Shown here: piece by piece, positions 12,881 through 64,000 of the stretch
How positions within the stretch are numbered: the first letter of the stretch is position 1
Layout: each line of letters opens with the position of its first letter
Origin: Lama glama
Taxonomy: Eukaryota
NCBI GenBank assembly: GCA_028534125.1
Contig: CM052825.1
Coordinates: 558,001-622,000, forward strand
Direction: 5' to 3'
DNA length: 64,000 bases
Notes under the pieces: generated by a model
Seen by the model: the letters and a program-made list of their open reading frames with translations, nothing else
Databases searched by the model: none
Told to the model about the DNA's origin: nothing
Translations under genes and position numbers: made by a program

Positions 12881-12902
12881 ACCCAGCGGCAGAGGGCCAG
12901 GT

Positions 12903-27942: not shown

Positions 27943-27948
27943 TTTATT
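27943..27948 (-). terminator. Polyadenylation signal (AATAAA) of C7orf50/CHLSN
   Basis: TTTATT on +, ~430 nt downstream of the C7orf50 stop codon. Confidence 0.8.
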
Positions 27949-28375
27949 GAAAACACACCCAGGTTTTCCCTGTAACTGGTCAGCAAGGCCATGGCATAGC
28001 CCGAGGAGGGAGGAGGAAGGGGCACAAGCCTCAGCTCGGGCCCTGGGTGGGCGCAGGCAGGGGACTGGGAGGCCTGCACCACCAGAGGGACTGCCAGACC
28101 GACGTGGGGCCCAAACCCACCCACTGACGGACCACAGCTGGCGGGAGGGGCCGGCTCTGGCTGGTCTCTACGATGTTCCCAGTAGAAAAACAGACGTTTC
28201 CCTCAGTAAGCAACTTCCTGGGGGCCCCTGGAGGCCAGGTTACTGCAGAGTGACCGCATTCTAATGCGAAGAGACTAGAGCCACCACCACCTCCCAACAG
28301 TCTGGCCAGGGAGTCAGGAGGGGGCAGTCCTTCCAAGGGTCGGGTGCCTGGGAGTCCCAGACCCGCCGGCCGCCC

Positions 28376-28561
28376 CTAGGAGAGCAGCTGCAGCACCTGC
28401 CGGATCCGCTGGGTCTTCTCCAGCAGCCGGGGGTCTGCGCCGGGCCCCCCTTCGTCCAGCTCCCGCATCAGCGCCTCTGCCTTCTGCACCGTCAGCTCGC
28501 GGGCGCGGCCCCTGAGCCCCTCCAGGTAGGCCAGCAGGGCGGGGAAGTGCTCGTCGGGGAC
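28376..28561 (-). CDS. C7orf50: C7orf50/CHLSN (cholesin) last coding exon
   Basis: Acceptor CAG|GTC; [61 protein letters not shown]; 186 nt; matches the recalled human C-terminus. Confidence 0.94.
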
Positions 28562-29207: not shown

Positions 29208-29289
29208 CTCGTCACAGTCGTACATGTGCAGCAGGAGCCAGGTCTGCCTTGTCTTCTGAAACCTCCAGTTGTCCTGCTTCTGGGCCCAG
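29208..29289 (-). CDS. C7orf50: C7orf50/CHLSN penultimate coding exon (WKF/DUF2373 core)
   Basis: Acceptor TTCTTTCCCAG|C; WAQKQDNWRFQKTRQTWLLLHMYDCDE; 82 nt; donor GAG|GTGGGT. Confidence 0.95.
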
Positions 29290-34055: not shown

Positions 34056-34231
34056 CCACACAGGTAGTCCAGGGCCAGCTGGGCCCCGGAGCGCCTGGCC
34101 AGTGAGCTCTGGGCCGTGGCAACGCCCGCCTCCCGCAGCCGCTTCCGCTCCTCCTTCTTCCGTTCCTTCTTCAGCTTCCTCTCCAGGACCCTCCGCTCCT
34201 CTGGGGACAGGGTCCCGAGCACTGCTGCTCC
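34056..34231 (-). CDS. C7orf50: C7orf50/CHLSN internal coding exon (basic helical region); upstream exons lie right of the window
   Basis: Acceptor CCTTTCAG|GGA; [58 protein letters not shown](G); 176 nt; donor GG|GTAAG; phase fits the next exon. Confidence 0.93.
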
Positions 34232-35292
34232 CTGAAAGGCAAAGGGAACCGGCGGTCAGGGTCCCTGGACCCCGCTGCCCGGAGCTCAGACGCTCTCCGG
34301 GCGGTGCGTCCCGGCGCAGAGCTCCACACACTCTGCTGGGAAGGAGGAAGGGGCTCCTCAAACCCCTGCATCCGCGGGGACCCAGTGCCTGGGGGAAGCC
34401 CTGTGGGATGGCCGGCATGTGTCCCGGGCACCCCCACTGGCTCCTGCTGCAAACCATGCACGTGCAGGGGAGCCATACCCACTGGGCCCCTCGGCTCTGG
34501 GGGAAGCAGGAAGTGCCTGCGCGGAGCTGTCTCTCCTTGGGCTGAGCCCTGGGGGCGGGGTGGGGGGACTGGGGTCTGTGACGCAATCTTCCTGCCACCT
34601 CTGCCTGGAAAGCACGCCCCTCCCCCACCCTGACCAACAAACCAAACAAGAGCGGAGTCCAAGGACTCCAGCAGCTATCCACACACCCTGAGCCTCGGGG
34701 ACACCGAGAGTTCACTGCGATTCAGGCTGGCCCCAGGGGCTGGCCATGGCCCCAGCGCTTCCAGGGAGGGCTCAGGCCGCTGCCCCACCACACGCCAGCA
34801 TTCAGAGCCCCCGCCCCAGTGAGCAAGGCAAGGGGCCCTTCCCACACACCCCAGTAGGCCCTGAACAAATGCCAACCGCCGACAACCTGTGTTCCCCCTC
34901 AACGCCCGCTCCTTCTGGAATCGTCTACAACAATAGATCAGCTCTCCCCAGCCCCTCCCTCTCCCTCCTTAGAACCAGCTGGATGCACCCACGGTGGCAC
35001 TTCGGAGCCGCACTGGGTAACTCAGACCACCCGCACAGGAGATGCTTCCAGACGGGGCCCCAGGCTCTCCTGGGGGGGGCCGGGGACCCGCTGAGCACAT
35101 GCCTCGCGTGCACACGTGCACTGCACCGCAGCCGGGCCAGCGAGCTGGGGGACAGCCGGGCGCCCGAAGGACAGGGCAGCAGCAGCTCTGACCACAGGGG
35201 TGGTCGGGGGTGGGTGTGCTCTCACCTACACTCACGCCTAGAACACCCCCGCCAGCCGCAGGCTCCCACGGACGGGGCTGAGTTTTAACGTT

Positions 35293-35545
35293 CTTTTTAC
35301 TGGGGGACACTGGTTTACGTCACGCGAGTTTTCACGCTTGTGTGCCCTCCAGCGTGCCCGCCACCAAAGCTGCGGTCTCCTCTGTCACCGTGGGGTCCAC
35401 CCTCTGGCCCAGCACGCCCCCAGCCCGCACCCTCCCAGTCTCCATGTCTTCCTGTTTGCCTCCTTGTACATGGTGTAGATTCCACGTGAGTGAACCGACA
35501 CTAGTCTTACTTCACTCGCACAGTGACCTCTGGGTCCATCCAACC
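35293..35545 (-). mobile_element. LINE-1 3' end fragment, GC-shifted
   Basis: TTTTTACTGGGGGACACTGGTTTAC...AGATTCCACGTGAGTGA...CTTACTTCACTCGCACAGTGACCTCTGGGTCCATCCA. Confidence 0.55.
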
Positions 35546-38500
35546 TTAAGTGGGATCTGCTGGGGTCTAGGAGACACACCCGCTGGCTCCCAGAAAAGCA
35601 GGCAACCCCCCAGCCCTGCAGGCCAGGCCCTGCCCTCTGAGCCACATCGGGGGCATCACACAGGCCACCAGGCCGAGTCCCAGTGAAGGGTCAGGGCTGC
35701 GGCAGTGGTGGGTGGGCCTGGGGGGTCTGTCAACGCTGATCCTGGAGGGAGGCCCGTAGGTTGGGCAGGTCTGGGAAGGGACAGGGAGGGTGGAAAGCAT
35801 CTGCCCGTGTGGTGGCCACACCCTCCACGGCTCCAGGTGTCGCTGGGCATGGCAGTGCCCTCAAACCCAGGGCCTGGCCCCTGCCATCCCCCTACTCTGA
35901 CCCTACAGGGTGCTGGCTGCTGCCCCAAGGCCAGAGGACCCTGGTCACTAGACAGGGGAGCCCTGTCCCACTCCTGAGGGCTCCTGGGGTGCTCTGTGGG
36001 CCCAGCGAAAGCCCGTGAGGTACAGCAGTCACCAAGGACGGACACAGGAAGGAGGCACGGCCCGGGCTGCAGGGCTGGCAGCAGGAACTTGAACTAGCGT
36101 GGGCCCAGGTGGAGGAGGACGTGGGCCAGGCGGGTCCCTCGGGGAGGATCCCCCAAGGGCCCAGCCACTTCTCTTGCGGCTTCCAGAATGCCCAGCATTA
36201 AGGGCCTAAGTCTCGGGTTAGGCACAGAATCTGAAAACTACAGAAAAGTCTTCTTTAAATCATTCCCAATTTGGTCAGTGGCCTCTGAGGCCCCGTCCCG
36301 CTGAACTGGTGGAAACAGCCAGCGGGTACGAGCGCTGCTGGCGGCACAGCCTGTTCCTGCAGGGGACACCGCCTTTGGGGGCCGACGCCAACACTCAGGG
36401 ATTAACACTAGGGTCTTGGTTCCCAGACTGTGGTTTTGGGGCCACCAGGAGATCCCAGGAGGCTGCCAACACTCCGGCTGCTGGGCTGCAGGGCCCCCAG
36501 CCCCACCCCAATCCAGCCACTCCTCCCCTTCCCTCCAGGGATCGGAGTCTCTAAGAAAGGGGGCTGACCCCGGAGGGCGGGGAGGGGCCCGTGTAGACCC
36601 AGGAAGGACTCACGAGGTCTGTGTGGTCATCGTGGTGCCAGTTTCCCTTCTCTGGGGCCCCCGGCAGCTCAACCACGGTGTCAGGCCTTCAGGGTGAGGT
36701 TTTCCCCTGCTCCGTGTGCATCTAGGGGTGGGTAGTCCTGAGGGCCCTCTGTCCCAGTCTGTGGTGGGGCAGGCAGCCCAGGAGTCCTCATCCTGCAGCG
36801 GGGGGCTGGAGATGGGGGGTGACATGGGAGCAGCTGAGGATCAGCCCTGAGGGCATCGTGAGGACCACCCACCCAGACTGAACTGGACACAGACGTGCGG
36901 CCACTTGGCACAACAGAGTGTGCTGGAGCGGGGGACCCCCCATCACCCTGCCTCCTGGGAAACTCAGGTCCTCCAGCTGGTGTGACCCATCCAGACAAAA
37001 CCCCACCCAGCACTCCCGTCTGGTCCTGAGCCAGCCCGTCCACTTCGGGCTCTCTGTCAAACGAGGGACTTCTCGCACGTTTATTCTGGGGAGGGGTCTC
37101 AACCGCCCACCACCACCCTTGGACATACATAGGGCAGCGCTGGGATGAGAGGAGGCCCTGTCTGTGCACCGCCTCGTTCCTCACACCTCCCACTGGGTCA
37201 GCTGCCCCGGCCGAGACGCCCCAGAGCTCCGAGCGCCCCAGACCCCAGGCGTCCAGCCATCACCCAGCCTGAGCTCGGGCCCCGGGAGGGTCAACAGCGG
37301 CTCTCTTGTGTCCCAGAGAAAGGGTCCATTGTCTTCCCGGAGCTCCCAGAGCCAAGATAAAGTGCACCCCCCCAACCCGGCACAGAGAGCTGGAGGGAAA
37401 GGGAGCCACCAGCGCCCCGCGATGCCCCATGCCGGTCCAGTGGGCAGAGGGGCAGCGGCCCCGGGGGTTTCTGGAGTGACTTGGCAGATGACCAGCCCCG
37501 CTACCAGCTGCAGAGGAGAGGGTGCTGGGACAGTCCACAGGGTCCCCCGATTTCCTGACAGGAAAGGCTGGGGGGCACGAGGAAGGGGGACCCCCTTGAC
37601 CTCCAGGACTGTCCCCACTCCTGCCAGGGGCTCTGCAGGCTGGCCAGAGGCACAGGTGCAAGGAGGAGATGGGGCTGGGGGCTGGCTGGGGCTGGCTCTG
37701 CGACACGGAGCAGCACAGCCTGTCTGCAGCGCAGGGACCCCTGCCTCTCCTGGGACGCTGGGCGCTGACAGCACTCAGCACCGAGATGGCGGGCCGTGCG
37801 TGCTGGAGTCCAGCCTGCCTCCTTGCAGGGGACACATCACCCAGATGTGGCCTGTGATGGACACTGTCTCTACCTGGTGACAGGTGGGAAGGCGAAGGAA
37901 GTGGCGGGAAGGCCTCAGGTGGCCCAGCAGGCCAGTGACAGAAGCTGGACACCCCCAGTCCCACCCCTCCTCCTTCCTCCCCACAGCCCCACCGCAGCTA
38001 GCAGTCCTGGCTTCTGCCAGGTGAGTGGCTGGTGGTCCGGAGGTGCCCAGCCTCAGCCACCACTTCTCTTCACTGAAGCCAGGCTGAAAGGGCCCTGAGC
38101 CAGGGCTCTGGTGCTCCGTCCACCTCAGAAGGCGAGCTCACCAGAGTGAATCCATACACGGCAGAACCACGGCGCCACCTCCACGGGGCCCCGTCCATGC
38201 TGCCCTCTGAGCGGCGTCCTGGCCCAGCACAGACAAGCCCCCACGCTCTCACCAAGGCCGCCGGCTGTGCGTGGAAGGTGCTCCGCCCCACCTCCCACCC
38301 CAGCTGGAGCCCCGACTGTTCAGACGGGTCTTGCTGAACCTCTCGAGTGCAGGGTGGGCCTTGTGCTCTCAGCCTGTCCCACCCTCCTGGGGGGTTCTCC
38401 CCTCTCCTGCAGACATGGCCCGGACTCCCCTGGAAACAGGCAGAACCGCCATGAAACAGGTGCGCTTCTGAGCCACTCCCGGGTAGCTCGCCGTGCTCCA

Positions 38501-39933
38501 CACAGTCCCCCTTCACCTCTGATGACAGGGCCCCCCCTCCAAGAAGGCGGGCCTTGCTCTGCTGGGTGGAGCTGGGGGCACAGGCTGGGAGGAAGGGCTG
38601 ACCAGGAATGCATCACCGACAGAGTCCCCAGAAGCCTTTGGTTTGAGATGACAGAGCGAAACTTCACCAAAAATGGTTTAAACAGCATCAGACTCGGCAC
38701 GTGGGGTCCAGCTTACCTCCTGCCACTGAGCAAGTGCCTGCAGGCAGTGGTCGCGGAGGCGTGTGGAGTGGGACCTGGTGGGGCTGCAGCGTGCTGGCTG
38801 CTGTCAGGTGGGGACCGGGACGGTCTTGCAGCAGTCGGCCAGCATCCCACCCACCACCTCCCTAACCCGCTCCATCTGTCCAGACAAATCCACCAGCCAA
38901 CAACCCTACAGAACGAGCAGATCAGGACTGGGAGGAAGCAGGGGCACTGCCACCCCCAGGCCATGGCTGGGACACAGCTGCTCACCTCACTGCGTACAGG
39001 TCAGACGGTGTCCCAAAGGGCACAGTGCCCTCCAGAGCTGGTCAGAGCCTAGGGTGCCTCCAGGTGCCACTCCTCCCGTTGTGTCCTCGAGGACCCCTAG
39101 CAGAGCGGTCCTTAACCATGGGTCTGTCTGCAGGCACGGTCTTCTGGGCTGGCTGCTCCTTCAGAGTCACTGGTGCTGGCTCACTCCCTGGGTCTGGGTG
39201 CCCGGCTGCCAACCAGAGCTCGGGCGCAGACAGGGCTCCGGAGACCGGGGTCCAGCGTGGAGAAGCAGAAGCGTGTGTCCCTACAAGGAAGCTGGCCCCA
39301 GAACACGAAGCCCCCTCTTCCTTTTGGTTCCGAACCCGGGTGTTGGCAGCATGAAGTCCTGTGCTCGAAGGCAGCTCCTGCAGAGATGCTGCTCCAGTGT
39401 GAAAACTCAACCCTGACTGGACCCACTACCACAATTACTAAAATTCAAAAGGGGACCTAGTAGCAGCAAACCACTTTCTCCTTTAATAAAAAATGAAGAA
39501 CAAAAAAGGGAGTGTTTCCCACAGTATTTTAATGAAACTTTTTATCCTGAAACAACCAGATGCAACTTGGGAGGCAACACAGAGCACCTACCCCAACCTC
39601 CCAGCAGAACCAGACCCTAAACACTCAGGTTTGTTAGACTTAACTAGGCACGCAAGTCCAAACTGTCAAGTTCTTTTAAGGCCGATTCCCCCAACACCTG
39701 AGTTATGCTGAGTTACTTCTGCTAATTCAGGATCATGGAGGAGTAATGTTTCCCCTCTCCATTTGGTTTGCAATACCCTGGTTAAAACTAGAACAATTCT
39801 AAACAGTTTCAGAAAGTGTGCACGCTGACAAAGCAGGAAGCTGCCCTGATCAACCACACTTGGGTCACGGGAGCCGTGCGTGGGGCGGCCGGGTCCCTCT
39901 GGAGCCGTGGCGCTGGCGCTGGTGCTGAGGCAG

Positions 39934-40009
39934 ACGCAGGCTCTGGCCTCGAGGGGCTCACGGCCAGAGACAGGTGAGCTCCTGGAGGACAGGGACAGCG
40001 GCAGCCCCG
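39934..40009 (-). ncRNA. MIR339: pre-miR-339 hairpin, intronic and sense to C7orf50
   Basis: The minus strand reads TCCCTGTCCTCCAGGAGCTCAC (miR-339-5p, 39995-39974), a loop, then TGAGCCCCTCGAGGCCAGAGCC (3p arm, 39960-39939). The arms base-pair. Confidence 0.95.
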
Positions 40010-43000: not shown

Positions 43001-43299
43001 CTGACGTGGCTCCCCCAAAGCGAAAAAAAGCGCCCCATTTGGCACAAGACTGTCAGTGACGTTTTCGCCCCGCGACAGCCTAGCAGCCCCTGGTCTGAAC
43101 TCCTCCTCAGGAGAGGAAGCTGCACGACCGGGCCCGTCCTAACCGGGCCCCGCTGCCGCTCGGCCCAGCAGGCACGGCGTCCAAGGCTCCAGGGCCCGCC
43201 AGAAGTACGAGCTTTGGGGGAAAAACAAAACAAAACGTGTTACTGCCCCAAGACAAGGAAGGAAGCAGCGAAACCCAAAAGCTTCACCAAACGTGTACC

Positions 43300-47694: not shown

Positions 47695-48088
47695 CACAAT
47701 GAAGTATCTACTGCCCAGCCGTTAGAATAAGACTTTCCCTGTGCAAAATCGTAGGTGAAGCTGGAGGGCACTGTGCTGAGTGAGGTAAGTCAGACAGAGG
47801 ACAGATACTCCATGCTTTCACTTCTATGTGAATTCTATGCCCAACGTTATAGTTGTTATTAAACCAAAACAGAGGCAGACTCAGGTACAGAGAACAAACT
47901 AGCAGCCACCAGTGGGGAGGGGGAGGGGAGGAGGAGGGTCCAAGCTACCAGGCAGGAAGGTGTGTGGCACAAGGAGCAGAGCCGGTGCCTTGCAGTGCCT
48001 TTGCTGGGGTGTGATCTATAGAAACGTCGGACCACTATGTTGCACACCGAAAACGAACACCGTGAATCCATTATACAAGTTAAAAAAA
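47695..48088 (+). mobile_element. Second nested L1 3' fragment (younger, laurasiatherian type)
   Basis: CTGGAGGGCACTGTGCTGAGTGAGGTAAGTCAGACAGAG...CAGACTCAGGTACAGAGAACAAACTAG...CTATGTTGCACACCGAAAAC followed by an A tail. Confidence 0.65.
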
Positions 48089-48909
48089 TCAAATGAAGTG
48101 GACAACTGGACTTCACCAAAATTAAAAGAAAAACCTTTGATCCCTTGAAAGATCTCATTAAGAGGATGTAGAGACAGGCTCTGACTGGGACAAAGTATTT
48201 ACAACCCCACGTGTAACAAAACCTGTTATCTAGACCCTATAAAGAAACCTCAAAATCAACAGTAGAAAACCACCACCCAACTAGGAAGTAGGGAAGAGAC
48301 ACAAGACGTCTCACCAGCGAAGACACAGGGGCGGCAAGCGAGCACGTGGAAAGGCGCTGGACATCGCTGGCGGTGCCACCACGCCCCGGAGGGGCTGAGA
48401 GGTGGCCCGCACACACCGCCGGAGGGGGCACGGTCATGGAAGCAAGGGAAGCTTCTGTCCACACAGAAGCCTGTGCAGCCTCGCGAGCAGCTTTGCCTGT
48501 AGGAATAGCCCCCAAACTGGACACCGCGGAAACAGCCCCCAGCTGGGGCTGGCATACCCTCACCGTGGAAAGCCGCTCGGCAGTCGAGAGGCTCGGACAC
48601 CCGCACGCGGGAGGACTGGGGTGCGGGGAAGGGCTCACCCCCGAGCCCTCGCCGCAGGTTCCACGTTCAGAGCCCCTGGAACCGGACCAGAGGCCCAGGA
48701 GGGCTGTGCGGGGCCGCGGTGTCCCAGAACCCACGGGGCGACAAGCCCACACGGACCCACACCGCTCTGCACGGCGACAAGCCCCTGGTTTTGACGTCAT
48801 ACCAGCATCAAAGAAACCGCCAGGGGCAAGTGTGCGAAGGGTACAAGGGACCTCTCTCTGCTATTTTTGCAACTTCCTGGGAACTTACAATTATTTTTTT
48901 AATTTAATG

Positions 48910-49051
48910 TTTTTTTAAAATAATTTCTCTCTTTTTTACGAGGGGGAGTTAATTGTATTTGTTTGTATTTGGAGGAGGGGCTGGGGATTAGACCCAGGAC
49001 CTTGTGCAAGCTAAGCATGTGCTCTACCACTGAGCTATACTCTACCACCCC
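48910..49051 (-). mobile_element. tRNA-derived SINE, camelid type, near full length
   Basis: Minus strand: GAGTATAGCTCAGTGGTAGAGCACATGCTTAGCTTGCACAAGGTCCTGGGTCTAATCCCCAGCCCCTCC, then an A-rich segment, AATTAACTCCCCC and an A tail. Confidence 0.85.
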
Positions 49052-52000
49052 TGTAATTATTTTAAAATAAAAATTAAAAGAAAAAAAATTATGAGGCATC
49101 CAACCTAAGAAGGAGCGTCTGTGCCTCCAGGCTCGGGGAGCAGGGAGGGGGAGTGGCTCAGAGGCTGGTCCCCCACAGGAGCGGCACATCTTGGGGACAG
49201 CCCCCCATGCAAGGCAGAAGGAGTGAGGCCACCGGTGGGGACCAGCCTGGACAAACGCCCAGCATCCAGTCCCAGTCCTGAGCCCACGTTTTTCTCTGTA
49301 GGGGAACCTCTCGCCTTGCCACCTTCTCATCGAGAAGTCTCACTGGGTGAAAAAAAAACAAGACCCCACCAGTGTCCTCTGGGGCCTCGGTCAGGACACT
49401 GGCACAGGGTGGACAGCCTGCCCCCCATGACTCGGCCAGATCTGCCGTGGAAACGGTGTGCTTGCAGCCTCAGGGCCCCGGCCTCCTGGGCCACCTCTGA
49501 ATGGCAGGTGGCTGCGGGCCCCCGGACGTGGCAGGTGGGGGGGGGGGCGCCAGCACAGGCTGCTGAGAGCGAGACCTCCGGGACACACGCTCCTCCTGGG
49601 ATCTCACTCCCCCTCGAGGAGGCGCCTTCACACACACTATTTTTAACATTGATTAAAGGTTTGGGAAGAGAGAAAATAAACTCCCAGAATAAAGACTTGA
49701 GTTCTCTCCCCTCCTGACCACAGCTTCGGTGCACACATGTGTGAGGTCTTAACCGACGGCAGCCGTGCCAAATCTGGAAGCTGACTGGCGGGCGTCTGCA
49801 AGGCGCAAGGAGGACCAGGGTGCTGATGGGGAGGTTCCCACCAACCACCAACCAGAGGGCTGAGCACCGGCTTTGTGAAGGAGCAAAACAGGGAAAACAG
49901 GAGGAATGAGGGTGTGCACATCCGAGGTGAAGACGTAGGTCCCCCAGCAGGAGCCGGGCGCTGCCCTGCAGCAGAGTCCCCACTGCGGCTCTGGGGTGCA
50001 GGGGGAGGCCCAGGCGGCACCGGGACACACTCAGCACCACCTGGCTTTCGACTGCCCCACTCTCCCTCGCCATCTCTGTCTGACATTATGGAAGAATCCA
50101 AACACACGCACAAGGAGGAGAGTGTGCCGACTCCCGCTGCCTGCGGTGTGTCTTCCCTCCTCCCCGTGCCCCCAGACCTCCCGTCAGCGCTTCCCACACC
50201 CCGCAGACACTCAGGTACGTCCACACACCCAACACGAACAAATAAGCACACGCGTAACTACAGCAGGATAGCGTTCTCTAAGTAACGGAGTATCACTGCT
50301 GATTGTACCGTTTGGAAACCAGACCGTGAGTTCTTCTTGGCCAAGAGTGCAGCAGACAGGTTTGATCAGGGTGAAACACCAAGTCGTGCCCCGACCTCGG
50401 GGCATGTTACCTCGGCTGCACGGCGGCTGCCCCGAGTCGCACAGGGCTCGACGTCTCCCGGGCTCCCACGCGCAGACTTCCTCCACGTCCCCAGCTCTGA
50501 GGAACATCCAGAAACAAGCTGCAGAGCGTGCCCCTGCAGCCACGCCCGCCCTTCCTGCCCACGACCACTCACCGGCCACGGGGAACCTGCCCCTTGTGAA
50601 GGCTGGGGGAGCGCCCCGGGTCCACGGGCAGGGGCAGCACAGACGCAGAAGCAAGGTGTCCACTGCGGATGAGGGTCTGGTCCCTCCCCCGGAGCCGGGA
50701 GCGTCAGGGGATTTTGCCAGAGCCCTTGACTCAGGACTAACCCGGCTCCATGCGAGACGCTGCAGGGCTGCGTGGGGCAGCTCCCCTCGGGGCCTGAGCC
50801 CCCCCACGCACAAAACAGAGCAACGCCGCGTCCCCTGCGACGAGGCTGCCAGGGGCCCTGCACTGAGCCGAGCTGTCTGCTCTGGTCAAGAGCCAGCCTG
50901 GCCTCTCTAAACGGTGCCTCCACCAGGATTCCTAAATGCAAGAAATCACTCCGTCCAGACTGCCCAGGTCTGCTTCAGAGAAAGCGGCTCAAGGCCGGTG
51001 CCAGGGGCCCCACCCAGGCCCCACGGGCTTCCTCTGGGACACCCGGCTCACCTGAACCTTTGTGTTCCCCAGAGAACAAGCAGGTCTCTCCGATGCAACA
51101 GCCAACGTGGCTGAATAGCTGCGTTGCAATAAAGCTCAGTTAAAAAGGTCGTGGGGCCAACTCTGAGATACCCTTGCCGCTTCGAGGTGAGGGAGGAACA
51201 AAGGCTAGAGCCCCGCACGCCTGCATCCTCCCCTTGCCTGCAGACAGCGGTCGGGGGCACTGCTCCCAGTCCTACAGAGACGCGGCCGCCGAGGCCCGGG
51301 CTCTTCTCCCCGTGCTCTTCTCCCCGTGCCTGCGCGGAGCAGACAGCCCGCCCCCAGCCCCAGGCCCCGCGTGCTCCTCACTAGCATCTGCTGGGCCCCC
51401 ATGGGCAGTGAACTGTCCTTCCCTCCACGATCCTCTGCTGGAGGGGCTATGGGAGAGCTGGGGCAGCTGGGGAAGATGGGCTCACGAGGGGTCTAGAAAA
51501 AGGGCTGAGTTCGGCTGGTGGGCAGCCGCTGTCCCGGCAGGACTGCACCTAGAATCAGAGTGCCCCAGGTCCCGAGTGGACAGCTGGACTCCTCCTCGCA
51601 GAATGTCTTCCCTGCTTCAGTGGGGTCCTCATGCACCCACCCGGTGTCCTGGCGCCCTCCCCTGGCTCCCCCTACCCAGCTGCCGTTGGCTGTTCCAGGG
51701 GCTCTTGGGAGGGGCCACATTTTCCAGACCTCAGAGGCACCACCAAGGCTATGCCTGGGCTGCCAGGCGTGGGGTGCGCCTGTCCGCCTCAGGCTAGACA
51801 GGGCACTGGGGCAGGTGGAGGGGCCAGGGCTCCAGGCATGGCTGAAGCCGTGGCTTGGGGCTCGGCATGGTCTCTCTCGGCCCCAGTGGCCCTCCTCTGG
51901 GCTGGCCCAACCGCACCCTCAGGCCAACTCCAGGGGTCCCCGGTGCCCCCTGCAGAGGACCTGTGCATCGGCTCACTGCCTGCCTTGGCCAGCCCCTCAG

Positions 52001-53379
52001 CACGCTGCCCTGTCAGAGCCACCAGTCTCCCACGGGCTCCAGCTTACCCATGCCCGAGAAAGGCACAGCTCAGGCAGCGCTGCACTGGACGCCTGAGTGG
52101 GGTAGCCCCCAGGCCCTGCACACGGAGGGCTGCAGGGATGGCTGCCAGCTAAGAACGACACTTGGTATGGTCATCAGGCCAGAAGACTTCATGCACCATC
52201 AGACACCCATCCTGGTGCGTCCCGTGTTAAAAACAGGAAGATCTGCTTCCCCAGGGGACAGAAGAGCCACTGGCAGAAGCCATGCGGGACAGGATTTGGT
52301 GGAGCGAAGAGGCAGGTGCAGACGGAGGCAGGGAGGCAACCGCACCGATAAATGACGGCCTGTGACGACCACACAGAAGCCGCTGGCCCAGCTCACCGCT
52401 GCTGCCCATCTCACCGGCCCTTCCCAGGAGGGGCTCCCCACGCTCCTGGGCCCTGAGCAACACCAAGTACAGGAACCGAGCCACAGAGACGTCAGAACAC
52501 AAGCCACACTCCTGGGAACGAACATGTGAACCGTAAACGTTCCTCGCCCTTGGTCGACCTCTCATGTAAAGTCACACCTCCCTGTAGGTGCATCATTACT
52601 AAAAAGAGGCTGCACCTTTGGAAGGAAGGAAGGAAACCAGCCTGCCTTTTGGCGGGGCAGTGGTGACCCTCTGTCACCCTCCCAGCTCGCAAGAGAAAGA
52701 CCAGACACAGGCTCGGCCAGCAGCCCAGGGCCCCGACTGGGGGGGGGGGGGAAACGCGGTAGCGGCACGACCAGCAGGGGGCCTCACCGAGCCCGCAGCC
52801 CACGGGGTTGGGGGGCAGCTCGGGGGCAGCTCAGCGGGGCACCCACTGCCGGGCCGCCCTCGTCCTCCGAGGTAGGGGAGCTGGCCCTGTGAACACGGGC
52901 CTCCTCCCCGCCCCAGTGCGTGCCTGCCCAGGCACAACGGTCCCTGCAGACAGACAGACAGACAGACGGCTGGGTCTTGCACAGGAGTCGGCATGCGCTC
53001 TGGGAGCAGCTGGTGCAGACTGCAGAGCTGCAGCCCTCCGGGGAGTTTACACTCCCCGGCTCAGCAGAGGGGGCTCACTTTGAAGGCTCCCCGCATACGC
53101 AGACTCTGCCGTCTGGCCTGGGTGCCTGCTTGGCAGGGGAAGTCTTTCCCTGCGGATGAGGCAGCCAGATGACCTGAGGGCTGAGGGGCTTGAAGGGAGC
53201 TGCACTTCCCCACTTACGATCGGCAGCTTGACCAAGCGCGAGCCCATGGGCAGACTCGTTAAGCCTGGCCTTCAGGGGACTCTGACCAGGAATCCTGGGG
53301 CCCAGGGCCTTTCATAAAAAAGGAGGTAACAACACTTTTTAAGACTGCGGGGATGACCCCAAATCCCCAGCCCTAGGTT

Positions 53380-53490
53380 AGAAGTTGAAGACTACCTAGG
53401 TGCCAATTCTGGTGCCACTCTCTGCTGTGTGACCTTGAGCAAACTGCTTGAGGTTCCTGAGTCTCCATACAATTGAACGTGAGGAAAGTA
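53380..53490. mobile_element. MIR fragment
   Basis: CTGGTGCCACTCTCTGCTGTGTGACCTTGAGCAAACTGCTT resembles the MIR core. Confidence 0.55.
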
Positions 53491-53649
53491 CTGCGTTTTC
53501 TGGGTGGTAAGGCACATCTCCCCATTTCAGCATCTCTGAAATCAGGGTTCTCTCTGTAGCCGACCGTGTCAGAACTTAACCGGCAGACTGTTTTCTTGTA
53601 GTGGTCCATGAAGTGATGATCTACGGAGCACAAATGGAGTCTCAAATTT

Positions 53650-53738
53650 GATGAAATGTGGGAGTGTACTCTGTATTTTATGCTCAACTCTGCTGTGAGC
53701 CTGAAACTGCTCTAAAAAATAAAGTCTATTAAAAAAAA
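53650..53738 (+). mobile_element. L1MC-type 3' terminal fragment
   Basis: GCTGTGAGCCTGAAACTGCTCTAAAAAATAAAGTCTATTAAAAAAAA, the same terminus as at 47375-47413. Confidence 0.75.
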
Positions 53739-54499
53739 CCGGGAGTATATCCCTCGAAAGGCTGCTCTGGGCCCAGAGCAGGAGCGGCACAGGCTAAGCT
53801 GGGCATCGGCGCTGGCTGGCAGTGGCCAGTCCTGCCCCGCTGTCGGATGCCCGCTGTCACAAAAGTCCAGTGCTGGGGTGAGGAGCAAGTTACTGTCATG
53901 ACGACAGGGTGGAGGTAGGGGCCCCAGGGGTCTACAAGTGGCCTTGACAGAGAGTGAGATCTGGCCCTGCCCTTCAACCAGAGGGAGTGTGGTCCCCCAG
54001 CTGACCCCCGACTTCCCTCTCGATCCATGGTCAGGAAGCTGTCCTGTCAAGCAGGATGGCCCAAGGTGGAGCCCTGGGCCTGGCCGGCAGGACCACAACG
54101 CTCAGGGCCAGTCTTGGCGGCTGTTCCCTTCAGCCCCTGGTCACACAGCAAATCTGGATGAATGCCACAACCTGCATACTTGGATTTCACAAAGAAACGT
54201 TCTGAGAAACTGAGCCAGAACGTGCTGCCAGGAGTCCTGCCCCAGCACAGGGATCAGAGAGCCGGTGACCTCACTCTCAGCTTCCCCAACACCTAACTAT
54301 AGAAGCAGGTACAGAATTAATCCACTACGAACAAGGCACTGTCTCTTTAAATGGTTTTCCTGCGGCCAGTTCAGTTTACAAAGAAATTCCTAAAGCCAGG
54401 AAGTAAACGGTGAGTTTGGAGCCGCCGAGCACGCTTCAGGGAAGAGGAGCAGGTGCACCCGGCAGGACCCATTCCGACCTTCGGAGGGAGGGGGCGTCT

Positions 54500-55050
54500 G
54501 TCCCCTGCAGCTTAGAGCGCGTTTGGCCACCCGACCCCGGCCGGGCCACTGGGTCTGAGCGCCGGGAACCCAGGCCCAGGGGCGGGGCTCACCGGGGCGT
54601 GGCCAAGCCCGGCGAGCTCCCGGGGGCGTGGCCTGGAGGGCGTGGCCAGCGGGCAGGCGCGGTCACGTGTGTACACAGGCCCGCGCGGCGTGCGCGCCGT
54701 GAGTCCTGCCGCCTCCTCGGAGCCCGTAGCTGCCCGCCCGGCGGCCACTGCGTGGCCAGCGGCCCAGCAAGCCGGTGAGTGGGCGCCGAACGCGGGGTCG
54801 GGGGCGGTCGGCCACATTAGGGTCTCGGCCTGCACGGGGGCAGCCCGGGGACGCGGCGGCCCCGCGCGGCCAGTGCTCCGCTCGGACTCTCGGGTCCCCC
54901 GGCCCCGCCCTGGCGCTGTCCCCTTGAGGGTGGGGGCGCTGTCCCCATCCGTGGCTGCCCTCCAGCCGCGCCGAGCCCAGCGCAGCGAAGCCGGGGCCGC
55001 TGCCCTGCGGTCATTCACCTGTCCAGCGGCAGCTGAGATCTGCTGGCCGC
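54500..55050 (+). promoter_or_regulatory. CpG-island promoter and probable non-coding first exon (~54690-54774) of GPR146
   Basis: GC box ~54579; three GGGCGTGGCC (Sp/KLF) copies at ~54595-54647; E-box GGTCACGTG at 54661; consensus plus-strand donor CCG|GTGAGT at 54774/54775; compatible acceptor at 63333. Confidence 0.7.
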
Positions 55051-58000
55051 CTAGGAGGTTCCGCACATGCCCTGCGGGGGACTGACTGCGTCCTCCTGGG
55101 TCGCCATGGTTATAGCTTTCGTCCCTTTTTGATGAAAATTGATTGTAAAATTTTGGTAAGTTCTGGAACAATCTCTAAATGGAGACATCAAGTGTCGTTA
55201 ATGGTCTTGGGCATTTGATGAGAATATAGACTCCCCTGGGCACGCAAAGCCTTCAAAACCTAAGGCATTGGTGCTCCCCAGGCTCTGAACACCTATCCTA
55301 CCGGCAGCAAGAAACCCAGCACCGAGTTAGGGACGCAAACATGTCAGCGCGGTTCTCTTAAGCTGGCCGCTGGTCGGAGTGCAGCGGTCTGACCAGTCTT
55401 TGTAGCGCGCGGACCGACGTAAGTCTGTATCTGATAGACGGCCCAGAGCTGCACTTGTCCTCTGATCTCCCCTCATTGCTGGACGTGCACTCCCTCCGCA
55501 GCTCCTCCACCTGTACATAACCAGCTCCTTATCTTAAGGGGCCAGCAGGGCACATCTAGCAGGGGCTAGCGTTCAGTAACGGTGGCCAGAAGCTTGCTTC
55601 ACAGGCCTCGGCAGATATGGGAGTGTGAGTAAGATGGCCTGACCAGGGTCCCAGGCTGCTCACGCGTAACGGGGAGCATCGTGCCTGGGTGCTAGCCGGG
55701 GCACCTCTGGGTGACAAGAGGCACTAGTAATGACCGCGGCAAGGGTATGGCTGCTGAGCTCCTTAAGGAAGTGCTGTAGGTCCAGCTCTCCGAACCAGAA
55801 CCTCAAGTATCTTCCCAAACGCAGAAGGCCTCTAGAGATAATAGGCTTTGAAAAGCCGCGGCTTCTATCTGGGGAGTGCTCGCCCTGCCAAGTCACGGAC
55901 AGGAAGCTGGGGCTGGAGCAGGGGTGCTCCTGCCCCAGGGCCACATACGCAAGGGGCATCTGGCCAGGGCCCTGCCCATGGCCACTGCTCTGCTGCCTCC
56001 CTGGTGGGTATGGAAACCTCCTGAGGAAGGAGGCGCACAGTGTTGACTTGGGGGACCCCGGGACTCGGGGAGAAAGGCACAGACCTCCACCTGACGGAGC
56101 AGGGTGGGGGGTGAGGTTCGATGTGGAACTGGTTGTATCTATTACGTAGTGAAAAAGTGACTTAACTGCAAAGACACCTGCCAGGAAACACGCGTGTGTG
56201 ACTGGTCGGGGCTGTGTTCTGGGGCGGGGAGAGGACGGAGCTCCTTGGGGAAGCTGCATCCACCTCCCAGGCCCTAGGGTGTCATCTGGATTCCTGAGAA
56301 AACAGCCTGCCACCTGGCCTTTCCTGACCCAGCGACACACCAGGGCCGTGTCTCGGGGGTGGGGCTGTGGTGTCAGAGCGTCCAGCTTTCCCCTCACCGC
56401 TGCTGCTCAGCTCTCTAAGGATAAAGCCACCTGCACGACTGGGCAGCACCAGGCTGCATCTGTCCACAAGGTCTACGCCCAGGACCCCTAAACACTACTC
56501 AGGCATCAAAGAGCAGGGGGGACTCAGTGTGGAGAGTAAAAGTGAATTTGCCCTCTAATTTGAGAGGCCAAAATGTGATCCTGCCAAGGAACAGAGTTTG
56601 GTCCCCCAGGACCTGTAAACAGAACACCCTTCAAGCAGCAGAGGGACAGGGTGAAGTGGGCCGGGTGTCCCATGCTTCCTCAGCAAATCGCCCTGGGTCC
56701 CTTTCCTCCCACACATGCCGGCAAGAGGGCAGGACGCACCCTGGAGTAAGTTTCCTAGTTTCAATTAGAACCAAGGAAGCAACTGTTACTCTTAGACCAA
56801 ATATAATAAGTAAAAATAACGGCTGGTTCCTCCCTTGGACAGAACCACAGGTGGTGATAAGATCTGGGGCTCTGAGCACCTCCCCCAGGTAACAGCACAC
56901 CAGTCAAAAGCTGGGCGAGCTGGGGGAGTCAGTAGAGTGCCAGGCCTGCCTGGAGTCTGAAACGGAGCCTGGAGCCGTCCTCAGCCTGGCCCTTGAATTT
57001 CTTTTTGTTCCTCTTTTTCCCGGCCCAGGGTACCTGGGGGGAGCAGTAGCCTCAAACCAAGTCAGGGAACAAAAAAGCCAAGTACCTAGTGCTCCGGAAA
57101 CAGAGAACACGTGTCCCATCCTCCTCCAGGGAGAGGAAGCCTGGGGCCGGGGCAGGCGCCCTGCTGGCCCAGCCAGCGGCCAGCCGGCCTGGTTCCCCAC
57201 AGCCCTTGCTTCTCATCCATGCAGGCTGGGAGGCAGCTTAGTTTGTGCATCTGAGCCAGGCTGGGTTTTCACTCTCACTACTCTGCAGTTTAGAACCGCA
57301 AAAAGCAAAAGGCTACAAAAATCAAAACCACCCATCTATATGATGAACTGTTTCTTATCGCAGCCCAGGAAGGCCCAGCGTCTGTGATAGGAATCAGTGT
57401 GCGCAAGCTCTCCACACTGAAAACCTACGAAAACACCAGCCTTTCCGGAGCGTCTGGCTCCAGCCAGCTGGATGTTAATTGTAGCTAAAGCGTCTGCCCG
57501 TTGTTACAAAAGGAAATAAACATTCAGGAGTCATTTTCAAAGCATTTTGATGGCTCCAGAACGTTCATCTGAAGTCCAGGCACAGTGCACAGCAGGTCTA
57601 GAGGACAGTTGGCCAGGCCGAACTGTCTGTCCAACCAGGAAGCACTGCCTGGGCCTCTGAAGCGTCAAAGGGGACACGACTGTCCTCGCGACAAGAGGCC
57701 TCCTGGGCTCTGCTCTGCCCTCTACGCAGTGGGAAGAAAAGCCTTGACGCCATCTCCTGCATCTCTCTCCCCCACCCCCCACCCCCAAGGAGCCAGCCAG
57801 GCCTCGCACACATTAAGAAGGCCCCACTTCCGGGAGCTGGCAGCAGGTGGGAATGGGGGAAGGGGGAGGGCAGAACTAGCACAGCCCTTCTCCCAGGAGG
57901 TGACCTGGCCTTCCATTTCTGCCAGCTCTGTGCATGTGCACACACATGCACATGCAGGAGTCCCCTGCCACCATGCGCCATGCCACCCCCGCCCAGGCTG

Positions 58001-61000
58001 CTGCTCTGACCCGTTTGTGACATCCTGTTTCCATGGAGAGCACTGAGTCCTTCAGCCTTGAATTTTAGCAAGCTTTTTAGTTGCCTGCAAACAGTCACTT
58101 TTGAAGGGTTGGTTTCCACCGTTCTGGGCTCTTTTTTCAAGAGGCCTAGGAAGGACACTGACGTCTGGCCTCAAAACGCTTCCAGCAGCTGGCCTGGCTG
58201 GAAGGCAGGCCTTGCCAGCAGTGAAAGAGCAGGGACCACGGGGCGCATGCAGACAGGGGCCTCGTTGGGGAGAGGAGCCTCAGACTCTGTCCTGCATCTG
58301 GGTGGAGAGAGCCGACCCCTTGGGGTGGAGCACGTGGCCCTGGAGTGGGTGAGGGGACGGAGCTTGGTAAAGCCCTTGCGGCCCCACGGGGACCTGAGTC
58401 CCATGAGAACTCACACTTGGTTGTGACCTTGCTCTGGTCCTCCGTCCTCCCTCCCAGTTTCCTCTCTCCATGTGTCAGTTGACAGAGATTCCAAATGAAA
58501 GTTCACAGGATGGCTTCCTCTGCACAGAAGGGAATCCAGGAGGAGGGAGGAGGTCTGTGCTGCCCCAGCCCCAGGGGGTCACCAGGGCTCGCCCTCTGTT
58601 TCATGCATCCTCCCAACAGCCTCAAGGGCTTCCCTGAACTGGCGGACAGAGCTACTCAGTCCCCGCCCAACCACAGCCACACAGCTGGGAGCAGGGGGCC
58701 CGGGGAGCCCCGAGCCCGACCCAACCGTGTCAAGTCCTGGTCCCAGGGCCCTCTGCACTTCACACTGTCACCAGAGTTCTCCTGGCCACCTGCAGGTCCC
58801 TAGTACGGGGTGGGATGAGTCAGGCCGGGGGGGAGCGCCTGAGCTGCTTTCTCAGAGTGCAGAAACCCAGGACAGGAGCCCTGGTTGCAGGAGGGCCTGG
58901 ATTCCCGCTCCTGGGCCCAGGTGTTCCCAGGTGGGGCACTGCTGGGAGGGGGAGGGTGGCCCTGCCCCGTCTGTTCCACTCCATTGCCTGGGCCCCCGGC
59001 CCATAATAGGGGAGAGCTGCTGTCCCACTGGGGAAGCCCCGGCCCCTCCCGGGTTTCAGGACTCCTCGGACCTCGGCAGAGGCGTGGTCTGTCAGCTCAT
59101 CCTCTCTGTGGCCTGCTTCCCCCTCCAGCCCCACTCCTGGCCCACGTCCCGCGAGGCCCTTTCTGCCTAGTGTGCTGTGCTGCCTCGCCCGTCAGCATGG
59201 GTCCGGCCCCCACCCAGGCCTCAGGGCCGGCTGCTGGGGGGCTCCTGGCCCAGCGGCAAGCACCGAAAAGGAAGAAACCAGATGTCCTGGAAGGACTTGC
59301 TCAGGGCTCAAAGCAAGGAACCATCTTCCACGATTTCCGAGCCAGCAAGGAGCGCTGCCCAGGGGAGCTCAGGCCAGGGCCACCCAGTCCTGCGCTCACG
59401 TCAGGGGCCGCCTTGGACTCGGCAGCCTCAGCGTCTCCAGCTTCTCCCTGCCTGAGCCTGGAGCAGCTGCACCTCAGTGCCTCGAGCCCAGCTGACAGCC
59501 CCGCCAGGGAGCCACCCCCACCCCCCGAGGGGCTCGCACAGTGTGGCCGGGGGGTGGCCAGGCCTTCCCAGGGCTGGACGTTGGCAGGTCTGGGAGAGCA
59601 TCTCCTTGGAAGGTAACTACTAGAGCTGAGAGAGGTCTTGGAAGAAAATACTTTGACATTTATGACGAATGTCACTCGAGTGTAGGATCCGGAAGAGAGG
59701 GCTCTGGAAACAGCTAGTCCTTAGAAGCTTCGATGAGACAGAATGCCCCAAAAGGGCTCCCTTCCCTGGGCCTCCCGTGGACCCTCAGAGACAAAACCGC
59801 CACCTCCATGCGTACTGACCTCGCCCTGCCCACCCTGTCAGAGGCAGCTGCTCTGTCAGATCACTGTGTTGTCCACGTGGGCAAGCCCGAGGTCCACCAG
59901 CAGCTTGCAGAGATGCTGCATGGCAGGGCCACAGCCCTCAGCGCCACCAGTGGACGCAGCCTTTCCGACCACGAACCCCTGGCCTTGAGTGCCTTGCCTA
60001 GCTTTCCTCTAGAGGAGAGGCCACTGGGTCCGAGAGATGACCCTCTGTGTTGCAGGAGTGGTGACCTCAGCTTCGTTCCCATAAAAGCTTCCTTCCCGCA
60101 GCCCCAGCACCCTGCGAGCTGCGTAAGCAGCGAGCTGAGAGCATCACCCCTACCCTCACTGGACAGCAGCCCCTCCAAGCCACGTGCAGGCCAGCCTGGG
60201 CATCGAGATGCTGGCCTGACTTCCCGGTCCTCTCACGTTTTCTGTATTAAGTGTGGTCTTTGAGCTCCGCCCCCCCCCCCAGGTTGCCCTCTCTGTGATG
60301 CACACGTGGCTAAACTCGGAGGGAAAGAGACCCTGGGCAGGCACTGAAGCATCAAGGGCAATGTTCTGGGGTGGCTGAGGGCTCCCTGGGTGGGGCGCTG
60401 ACCCCTGCTTGTGAGCCTCAGGTGAGCGGTACTTCGGGGACCTGGCCCGGGGCCCTGAGCCGGCCTGCACTGAGTCAGTCTCTGCTCCGCCAGGCTGGCC
60501 TGCTGGCCCCCAGCCCGGGATCACCCTGCCCTGGAGCTGTGAAGACCTCTCTGCCCCCTGGGACCAGCGGGGAGCTGGAGGGGAGCGGGCGCTGGGGAGC
60601 CACCTGTGCTCGCAGCGCTGAGACAGCTGTCCCACCAGCAGAATCAGAAAACAAAACAAAACCCTCAGAAAGACGGGGTGCCAGTCCCCTTCACATCACG
60701 TTACTCTCCTTACAGGATAGCAGGACCCAGTGACCACCAGACCACCTTAGACAACCCCCGGCATGTGCCAGGGCCCAGCCCACAGAGCCACCTCCAGGCT
60801 CCAGCCTCACAGTGGGCAGGCCTCCTGCGGCCCCTCCCTGGCCAAGCCAGACCGGGGCCCGGCAGTCCTGCCGTGGCATCACTGTGGACCTGCCCGTGCT
60901 CGGCGTGCCCCTGCTCTGCGGACCGAGGCAGGTGGCAGTCCTGGCTCAGAGAGGCCACGCACAGCACATCACTGCGGAGGCCAGGGTCCCGAGAGTGAGC

Positions 61001-63339
61001 AGGTCGTGTGCACCCCAGTGGCTGGGTGTGCGCCTTGGTGTGGTCCCGGTCCCTGTGCAGTGAGGGAAGGGAGGGGCTGTGGCTCGCAGAAGCCATCTTG
61101 GGGGAGGGGGGGAGGCTAGGACCCTGACTGGGCAGAAGGAAGAGGTTCAGGGACAGAACTGGGTTTGGCTGAGACAGCCGGGTGGCAGGAGTGGGGGTCC
61201 AATGGAGGAACCCTGGGGTGCAGTCCTGTGGGAGAGGCAGGACGGCAGGTAGGACTGGCGCAGGCACCTTCTATGGGTGCTGGTGCTGAGAGCAGCACAG
61301 GGAAGGGTGGGGAGGGTGGGAGGCGGCCAGACCAGCCAGTGAGAGTCTGGAGGCCGGCCTGGCAGAGACAGGAGGCAGATGAGGGGTAGCCAGGTCCGGC
61401 AGCCCAGAGGGGGGCAGTGGGGGGAGAGGGAGCACGGAAGAGGGCGATGCAGGGCCCAGAGGGGCCTAGAAGAGCCCAGTGGGCAGTGCAGTGAGGCAGG
61501 GGTGGGCAGCTCTGCCTGGGAGGTATAACGAGGGACCCAGGGACGGGGTGTGGTGACAGGGCCAGCCTGGAGGAGAGGCCATTGGGGTCCTTGCTGACCC
61601 TGACCCCTTGAGCTGAGGGGATGCAGCAGGTGATGGGGTCGCCAGAGGTTGGACTGTTAACTCTGCCATTTGGGGAGAGCATGGCCGCCTTCAGACTGAG
61701 AACTGCAGAACATGGAGCGTCCAGCCCCACGAGGCAGGGGCCACCTTGTCCCTTCTCTCCTGCCTCTGAGAGGGACAGAAACGCAGAGGGCCCTTCCTGG
61801 AATTCTGGTCTTTGCGCTGGCTGGAGTCCAAGTTCCTCTTTCTCAGGAAGGAAGTGAACAGAGAACCTGGTGACTTGAAAGACAGCCCAGCTCAGACCAT
61901 GTGGAGGGTGGCAGCCAAGCCATTGTCCTCAGGCCCCCTCCCCAGACAGCTGGGGCCGGGGGAGGAGTCTTGTTCCCAGATTCCTGCACTTGCAAAACCA
62001 GAGTGCGGAAGAGAAGTGGGGTAGCAACCACTGGGAAACAAGATGGGGAGAGGCAGGGCTGGTCTCTGCAGCCTTGGGGCAGGCTTGGGGCTCAGGAGTG
62101 TCTCTGGGGTCACAGGTGCAGGATGACAGGTAGGAGCATCCTGCAGGAGTCTCCCAGTCCCTGGACAGGGCAGGAGCCCCCGCCGCCGTCCCCAGAACAC
62201 CAGCTGCCCTGCCACCTGGGCAGGTGGACACTTCCCGACGTGACCGCCTCTCCTGCCAGACCCAGTGCTGCTCTGCAGTTCTCGGGGTGCCAGTGGGTGC
62301 AGCCTCTGCTCTGCTTTGTCTGCACTGTGCAAGAGAATGACCGAAAGTGGAGGAAAAGTGGGGCCTCTGAGCTCACGCCCAGCACTTGAAGCCCAGCACG
62401 TGACTGGTAGTTGACACGTAAGAGCTACTAGTAGCTCATGAAGCAAAGTGTGTCAGTTCTGTGGCTGTGATCTGCCCGTGAACAAAAACTCAGGCAGGTT
62501 TTTAACCTAAAGCCCAGCGCAGCCGACAGCTCAGACCCTCACAGCCCCCTTGGGCCTGGCGAGCCGCTGCACAAGCACGTGGGCCCATGAAGGAAAATTC
62601 TGAGCAGATTTACTCCGTGTGACGCTTTCCCAAGAATCAAGCCATTCTTTGCCCAGGGCAGGCAACCCCTTGTGGCCGCTCTGCTCCCTCCTCCACCTCA
62701 GCTGCGTGTGCGCCCCTCTCTACCGCGGAGGGCCAACAGTTCCTAGTTCCTGCAGACACCTGCGCAGTAGGAGTCCTCCAGGCTGAACCTGTGGTCCACC
62801 AGGATGGGTCTGGACCCCAGGGAGGGGCAGGGGCAGCAGGGGACCTGCCTTCTTGCCACCAGTGGGTGGGGCCATCCACCCTGTGTGCCAGCCCTTTCAG
62901 ACTCAACCGTTACTGCCCAAAACTGGCTGTGAGCAGAGAGGGAGGGGCTGGGCAGGGGGTGAGGGGGATGTCGTGAGGCTCCCACCCGCACGCGCGCACA
63001 CTGGCTGGCTGCAGACAGACGGGGAGGCCAGGGGTGGCTCAGCTGCCGGGCTCCTTGTTGGCACCAGTTGTGGGGCACAGAGTGAGGCAGGGGAAGCGGA
63101 GGCCCTGAAAGCCAGGCTAGGACGGGAGATGCTCGGGAGCGTAAGGTCATGTGGATGGGGCGGGACCCTCCTCAGGCTGCAGCTCCCACGCCCTCTGCCC
63201 ATGGAGGGGCTTTGAAATGAGAATGGGGGGGAACGTCCAGGGCAGACCCCAGGGCCCATGGACACCCTCAGAGCTGGGTGAGGCCACAGCGGTGGGCTGG
63301 AGGGAAGGCACTCACTCTGCGCTCTCCCCACAGCCCGCC

Positions 63340-64000
63340 ATGTGGAGCTGCGGCCCTCTCAACGGCACGGGCGGGGGTGAGGACCAGCTCCTGTGCCCGC
63401 ACGTCCAGCGGGCCCTGTCCGCCCTGTCCCTGCTCCACCTGGTGGTCGGTGTCCCGGTGGGCCTGGGCTACAACGCGCTGCTGCTCGCGGTCAACCTGCA
63501 GGACCAGGGCAGCATGACCATGCCTGATGTCTACTTCGCCAACATGGCCGTGGCGGGCCTGGTCCTCAGCGCTCTGGCGCCCGTGCACCTGCTGGGCCCT
63601 GGTGCCTCCGGGTGGGCCCTGTGGGACCTGGGCAGCGCGGTCCACATCACGCTGCTCGTGCTGTTCAATGTGTCCTCACTGGTGACCCTGTACTCCACTG
63701 CCCTGCTCAGCCTGGACTGCTACATTGAGCGGGCCCTGCCGCGCACCTATATGTCCAGTGTCTACAACAGCAGGCACGTGTGTGGCTTCGTCTGGGGCGG
63801 GGCGCTGCTCACCAGCTTCTCCTCCCTGCTCTTCTACATCTGCGGCCACGTGGCAGCCAGGCTCGCGGAATGCGCCAGGATGCAGGACACCGAGGCCGCC
63901 GACGCCATCCTGGTGCTCACCGGGTACCTGGTGCCCGGCCTGGCCGTGCTCTATGCACTCGTGCTCCTCTCACGAGTCCGGAAGGCGGACACGCCGCTTG
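63340..64000 (+). CDS. GPR146: GPR146, class A GPCR, 5' part (220 codons; runs off the window end)
   Basis: Acceptor CTCTCCCCACAG|CCCGCC ATG; [10 protein letters not shown]...[13 protein letters not shown]...[24 protein letters not shown]...[21 protein letters not shown]...[23 protein letters not shown] matches recalled GPR146. It is absent from the ORF track because no stop lies in the window. Confidence 0.96.

Follow-up and report, generated by a model that had tools for sequence, protein, structure and literature searches.

The closest described counterpart of the locus considered here is the primate C7orf50 / MIR339 / GPR146 / GPER1 locus (human 7p22.3 and its macaque counterpart). C7orf50 has been listed as the host gene of miR-339 (PMC3105101), and the annotation of one macaque site reads 'intron 2 (C7orf50)/intron 1 (GPR146)', in a listing with MIR339 and GPER1 (PMC5545731). 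On a wider scale, a nested gene is found within 17% of human and 12% of mouse genes, mostly inside a long intron; neither relative orientation is strongly favoured, and co-expression is frequent (Montibus et al., Genome Res 2024, PMC11694760). Here we analyse a stretch of 64,000 nucleotides from Lama glama (contig CM052825.1, positions 558,001 to 622,000 of the forward strand; hereafter the window), in which the 5' part of GPR146 and miR-339 lie inside one long intron of C7orf50, the host gene being on the minus strand and GPR146 on the plus strand. Compared with the primate locus the genes are the same, their relative strands are the same and miR-339 likewise resides in a host intron; the differences are that the species here is a camelid and that the window covers no more than the 3' 36 kb of the host and GPR146 up to codon 220. 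Similarly to mammalian host/nested pairs in general, the nested gene sits on the opposite strand in a long intron and has its own candidate CpG-island promoter, and the host has several isoforms (Montibus et al., Genome Res 2024, PMC11694760). Unlike those pairs, the two products here have been reported as ligand and receptor. We consider it probable, at roughly three chances in four, that the camelid locus is orthologous to the C7orf50 / MIR339 / GPR146 arrangement annotated in primates and is an ordinary opposite-strand host/nested layout. The layout itself is already known from public primate annotation, and the pairing of the C7orf50 product, cholesin, with GPR146 has already been published.

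Three C7orf50 exons are read on the minus strand of the window. Exon 3 (34056..34231, 176 nt) encodes a stretch rich in lysine, arginine and glutamate and is flanked by ...tttcag/ and /gtaag; exon 4 (29208..29289, 82 nt) has ag/ and /gtgggt flanks, is entered in phase 1 and left in phase 0, and carries the W..KF..T motif; and the last coding exon (exon 5, 28376..28561) provides the C-terminus with the second half of the WKF domain and ends in a stop codon at 28378-28376. The phases of the three exons are compatible with each other. Exons were searched singly, each as its own query, and the last one alone matched the Pfam family WKF (PF10180) with 30.3 bits (cutoff 25; E 3.7e-7; profile positions 33-62 of 63), while a whole-library search with it returned 108 relatives, the best of them 97% identical and the cattle cluster of NP_001103548.2 among them. 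Residues 49-185 of this cattle RefSeq cholesin (P0237, 185 aa) are collinear with the three exons. The earlier note on this DNA, which was made from the letters alone, had placed the exons at 34231-34056, 29289-29208 and 28561-28376, and the splice flanks, the stop codon and the collinearity with cattle cholesin show these limits to be correct to the base. The gene is closed by a 3' untranslated region (27943..28375, minus strand) with an AATAAA poly(A) signal at 27948-27943, located by a script scan, which explains why the earlier note began at 27943. A run of N (27760-27859) sits directly beyond the gene end.

The upstream partner of exon 3 was sought both in RNA and in the window itself. 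The RNA contigs derive from a related camelid and are 90-99% alike to the window; they come from four runs (X1, X2, X6 and X9) of four studies, cover the region 28350-34349 and carry neither strand, local depth nor level information. All four runs show the joint between exon 4 and exon 3 (29289->34056, GT..AG on the minus strand), and all have a 179-nt contig over exon 3, identical at 174 of the 179 bases. Beyond 34234, the exon-3 contigs of runs X6 and X9 go on for 22-26 nt whose sequence is foreign to the window, and a single contig of X9 holds 29 nt of exon 4, all of exon 3 and 22 nt of the upstream exon in one piece. This upstream-exon tag, GGCGGGTGCTTCCCCTGCGCCCGGCG, translates on the minus strand, across the join with exon 3, to PGAGEAPAQ/GAAVLG, which aligns with ...PGTGTAPAEG/S... 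of the cattle protein. Since the translation matches the end of the cattle N-terminal part, the upstream partner is the canonical N-terminal exon.

Within the window this exon has no counterpart. The 26-nt tag gave 0 matches at up to 3 mismatches, the best Hamming match in the window having 8; residues 1-48 of cattle cholesin (P0237) found no place in it; and the N-terminal peptides of the cattle and shrew orthologues (P0130, P0146) and of a third representative (P0129) gave, in tblastn searches of the window, only noise that was no better than a reversed-window control. Scans of the minus strand for motifs and for lysine-richness returned only exon 3 itself and a look-alike at 57033 (GKKRNKKKFKGQAEDGS, minus strand), which has no start codon and no in-frame donor, is matched by none of the real orthologue N-termini and was dismissed as a chance resemblance. 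The canonical N-terminus (MAKQKRK...) is thus not found in the window, and the RNA shows the N-terminal exon being spliced to exon 3 from outside, as the earlier note had supposed when it reported the N-terminal exon or exons missing. With its upstream splice partner missing from the window, exon 3 is preceded by an intron that extends from 34232 beyond 64000. The part of it inside the window (34232..64000, minus strand), between the off-window canonical N-terminal exon and exon 3, amounts to at least 29.8 kb.

The content of this intron within the window comprises mir-339, the candidate promoter of GPR146 and the GPR146 start codon. The mir-339 precursor (39918..40009, read 40009-39918 on the minus, i.e., host, strand) matches Rfam RF00763 over model positions 1-92 of 92 with 97 bits (gathering score 60; E 9.6e-17). 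Its hairpin folds at -39.4 kcal/mol, with a shuffle z-score of only -0.81 in this G+C-rich sequence. The coding exon of GPR146 occupies 63334..64000 on the plus strand, starting at an acceptor (63333/63334), with the ATG at 63340, and is cut by the window end after its first 220 codons, all of which are open. Over these 220 aa the frame is 99% identical to GPR146 of Camelus bactrianus (333 aa), it is 58-84% identical to GPR146 proteins from fishes to mammals among the matches listed, and it scores 32.4 bits against the Pfam family 7tm_1 (PF00001; cutoff 30.5). The Rfam match, the GPR146 frame and the RNA splice of exon 3 to an absent exon together bear out the earlier claim that the start of GPR146 and MIR339 share one long C7orf50 intron. 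In other words, the host transcript, as seen in RNA from the related camelid, spans the 5' end of the nested gene.

The strong acceptor ...ctctccccacag/ at 63333/63334 lies six bases 5' of the GPR146 ATG and implies at least one non-coding exon upstream of the coding exon. CpG statistics and motifs single out a CpG island on the plus strand (54301..55200) as the candidate promoter and first exon; it contains repeated GGGGCGTGGCC boxes, an E-box CACGTG at 54664-54669, and plus-strand consensus donors /GTGAGT at 54699 and 54775. The island fits a GPR146 promoter, and transcription of GPR146 presumably starts in it. Of the earlier proposal of a promoter at approximately 54.6 kb and a coding region from 63340, the coding start is confirmed, and the promoter agrees with the island but keeps the standing of a candidate. 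The CACGTG E-box among the GC boxes of the candidate promoter is a motif match only; in a cholesterol-linked gene it may be of interest as a candidate SREBP or USF site. A possible conserved internal 5' exon of GPR146 is found at 56812..56889 on the plus strand, followed by the donor CAG/GTAACA: an N-terminally extended macaque GPR146 isoform (P0039) has its best match at 56812-56883 of the plus strand, a weak one (E 0.002, 54% over 24 aa).

Several points weigh against reading the locus as the camelid version of the primate layout. Neither the N-terminal exon of C7orf50 nor the 3' end of GPR146 is inside the window, so that complete nesting is not proven within the window and leans on the primate annotation; of the earlier statement that the nesting is conserved in a non-primate, what stands is that the 5' part of GPR146 and miR-339 are inside the intron. 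The RNA contigs stem from a related camelid at 90-99% identity and not from the species of the window, and they come without strand or level. That the nesting serves no special regulatory purpose is something we infer, as a default position and not as a result. Finally, an assembly gap of 185 N (46819..47003) in AT-rich, LINE-1-like (long interspersed nuclear element 1) intron DNA could in principle hide a short exon, which its LINE flanks make unlikely. The left flank of the gap presumably is the C-terminal part of LINE-1 ORF2 (open reading frame 2) and the right flank, as we take it, LINE 3' sequence. The left-flank frame gave a weak Atlas lead to 'LORF2 protein' (0.81), and a Pfam search of the open reading frames flanking the gap returned no match. 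One LINE segment recurs in direct orientation at 46491, 47617 and 48312, which shows the gap region to be a patchwork of LINE fragments, and no exon or frame of C7orf50, mir-339 or GPR146 crosses the gap.

The window has a G+C fraction of approximately 0.55-0.74, except for an AT-rich patch at 45-48 kb, and it contains N runs at 11388-11527, 27760-27859 and 46819-47003. A Pfam search of ten long open reading frames in the intron found no domain in any of them, so no hidden coding gene was found and these frames are artefacts of the G+C-rich DNA.

Taken as the camelid orthologue of the primate arrangement, the locus would work as follows. Transcription of C7orf50, the gene of a lysine-rich WKF-domain protein, would start at a distal promoter to the right of the window and proceed on the minus strand, and its canonical N-terminal exon would be spliced to exon 3 at 34231 across an intron covering at least 34232-64000. 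The mir-339 hairpin, being on the host strand, could be released from host transcripts or from those of an internal promoter. This internal CpG-island promoter, at approximately 43.87-44.06 kb, could drive miR-339 and exons 3-5 without passing GPR146. The intron would further carry LINE debris, with the assembly gap in it. GPR146, on the opposite strand, would have a CpG-island promoter of its own (approximately 54.3-55.2 kb) and, after a long 5' intron, the coding exon that starts at 63334.

The internal promoter is the newly noted detail of the locus. A CpG island at 42901-44300, with a G+C fraction of 0.73 and an observed/expected CpG ratio of 0.85, is stronger than the island at 54301-55200 and precedes mir-339 on the host strand by 3.9 kb. 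Inside it we place a putative core promoter and alternative first exon of C7orf50 (43866..44063, minus strand; the exon limits are approximate readings of the sequence), with two CCCCGCCC boxes, a CCGGAAG motif, ATGCGCAGTGCGC and a donor GGAG/GTCAGT at 43866/43865. Motifs of this kind characterise TATA-less housekeeping promoters. Predicted models of cholesin, isoform X1 of macaques (P0153, P0245, P0247 and P0252) and a model from cat (P0157), match 44063-43878 on the minus strand with their first-exon parts (E values of 1e-9 to 2e-10), in two different frames; the macaque models thus have an alternative first exon in the internal CpG island, as appears to be the case here. An isoform from humpback whale (P0125) starts with MRSAR, as does the camelid ATG at 43945, which, spliced through the donor at 43866, would not be in frame with exon 3. 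The different frames of the matches and the out-of-frame ATG indicate that it is the DNA rather than the protein that is conserved, which fits a non-coding alternative first exon with its promoter. We therefore propose a conserved internal CpG-island promoter with an alternative first exon of C7orf50 at approximately 43.87-44.06 kb, which camelids probably use as well. Transcripts that start there never cross GPR146.

This raises an alternative in which there is little or no functional nesting: C7orf50 transcripts would, in most tissues, start at the internal island near 44 kb, the polymerase would rarely cross GPR146 and the distal promoter would be a minor one. The internal first exon is conserved and used in the macaque and cat gene models, the whale model starts at the matching ATG, and the island has housekeeping-type motifs. 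A single 10,792-nt contig of run X2 could also be understood in this way, as it extends at a depth of approximately 100 from within exon 3 (34205) across mir-339 to approximately 45.0 kb, compared with a depth of 17-26 in intron 3 of that run, although contig depth cannot rank C7orf50 isoforms. The contig fits transcription from the internal island, as unspliced pri-miR-339 RNA, but it could also be plus-strand RNA or library DNA. Moreover, the frame of the internal first exon is not conserved, and with the ATG at 43945 out of frame via the donor at 43866 the resulting transcripts may not encode the protein, whereas two RNA runs show exon 3 joined to the canonical N-terminal exon and the curated cattle RefSeq entry uses the canonical N-terminus. 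On balance we regard a mainly internal start as unlikely and retain the ordinary host/nested layout, in which the internal promoter is an addition to the distal one.

The earlier note went further and suggested that convergent transcription could have a cis-regulatory role and separate the tissues of ligand and receptor. Put in full, host transcription running head-on across GPR146 would suppress one or the other gene in cis and keep ligand and receptor in separate tissues, and selection would maintain the nesting. The geometry permits interference (host on minus, GPR146 on plus, same intron), the layout is common to camelid and macaque, and transcriptional interference at host/nested pairs is documented in general (PMC13309782, PMC3192792). 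The expression data from humans point the other way. In human biopsies, steady-state C7orf50 mRNA reaches 3.2 RPKM (reads per kilobase per million mapped reads) in liver and peaks in adipose tissue at 7.9 RPKM, the tissue in which GPR146 mRNA peaks as well (35 RPKM); GPR146 mRNA is present in liver and low in gut (PMC11858417). Liver and adipose tissue, at the least, thus express both genes, which argues against simple exclusion. Furthermore, the internal host promoter would bypass GPR146 and thereby uncouple part of the host transcription, and a nested layout is expected to persist even if it has no function, since undoing it takes a rearrangement within a gene. With co-expression in humans, an internal promoter and nested genes being common, the evidence leans against the cis-regulatory idea, which we find unsupported and very improbable. 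The accompanying remark that nesting keeps the two genes inherited as one haplotype is true, but it is so of any genes this close.

A variant of the interference idea would make the choice of C7orf50 promoter a switch: distal transcription would run head-on through GPR146 and dampen it in cis, whereas the internal promoter near 44 kb would supply miR-339 and the 3' exons without touching GPR146. If so, tissues could set the level of the receptor through host promoter usage. We give this variant marginally less credit still than interference as such, and the plain host/nested layout remains the reading that we adopt. As a handle for experiments on interference, the internal promoter upstream of miR-339 is of use.

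What the host gene encodes is a separate matter. Under the name cholesin, the C7orf50 product has been reported to be a hormone from the intestine that acts on GPR146 in the liver (Hu et al. 2024, as described in PMC11749842, PMC11544383 and PMC11193724). According to NC-IUPHAR (the nomenclature committee of IUPHAR, the international pharmacology union), cholesin is a candidate ligand of GPR146, a receptor that is placed among the preliminary pairings for which further independent investigation is asked (PMC13494238). On the other hand, yeast Rbp95, an early pre-60S factor that attaches to helix H95 of the 25S rRNA, is presumed to be the orthologue of C7orf50, a nucleolar protein whose WKF domain binds RNA (PMC9508819), and a 2026 study describes C7orf50 as a nucleolar protein of the granular component that ribosome biogenesis requires, stating that its disagreement with the hormone report is unexplained (PMC13178565). 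Yeast Rbp95 (Ycr016w) resembles C7orf50 in having a WKF (DUF2373) domain and a basic N-terminal region, and the likely orthologue that SGD gives for it is human C7orf50, a nucleolar protein that binds RNA (PMC9508819, PMC13178565). The orthology with Rbp95 is taken here from the literature. A role as a secreted hormone has been reported for the vertebrate protein only and not for Rbp95. A sequence search of the PDB with C7orf50 exons 3 and 5 returned no matches, so that a presence of the protein in solved pre-60S structures was not borne out.

In the cattle orthologue (P0237), examined because the camelid N-terminus is off-window, no signal peptide was found, the highest Kyte-Doolittle mean (11 residues) in the first 50 aa being 1.0; lysine and arginine make up 22% of the first 45 aa and 20% of the whole, and the isoelectric point is 9.9. 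Lacking a hydrophobic N-terminal core, it is not a classical secretory precursor, and its secretion would have to be unconventional, which leaves the published secretion data unaffected. Every named GPR146 protein among the matches listed is from a vertebrate, while the host family is reported back to yeast, so any hormone role would be a later addition to an old housekeeping gene. The 'hormone gene' of the earlier note has also been described as an old nucleolar ribosome-assembly gene: its pairing with GPR146 is indeed published, but the hormone label is contested, given the nucleolar location, the presumed orthology with Rbp95 and the NC-IUPHAR grading, and the pairing is still provisional.

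In the open-access literature we found no paper remarking that the gene of the reported ligand hosts the gene of its receptor. This is a comment on a known map and adds no new object; host/nested pairs of this kind number in the thousands. What the layout offers in practice is a warning for human genetics at the C7orf50/GPR146 locus. Cholesterol-associated variants reported for 'cholesin' sit near the 3' end of C7orf50, and variants reported for GPR146, e.g., rs1997243 in the same 7p22 region, raise GPR146 transcription. As the transcription units overlap, genetic support for the ligand is not cleanly separable from receptor effects without fine-mapping.

Two minor observations concern the 3' part of C7orf50. 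In run X9 only, a joint 29289->31046 (GT..AG on the minus strand; donor CAG/GTAGGA) marks an extra exon in intron 3, seen at 31044-31046, that is spliced to exon 4, probably belonging to a minor or non-productive isoform. In addition, a database protein of 166 aa (P0121, UniParc UPI0007046FB7) is 93% identical to exons 4 and 5 and consists partly of intron 3 sequence, with matches at 29205-29372, 29808-29918 and 30918-31022 on the minus strand; it looks like a mis-predicted camelid gene model rather than a real isoform. To the left of C7orf50, a scan for the P450 haem motif revealed no last exon of CYP2W1, although synteny with human predicted one. The same flank holds further CpG-island-like stretches, at 12001-13100 and 17001-17500.

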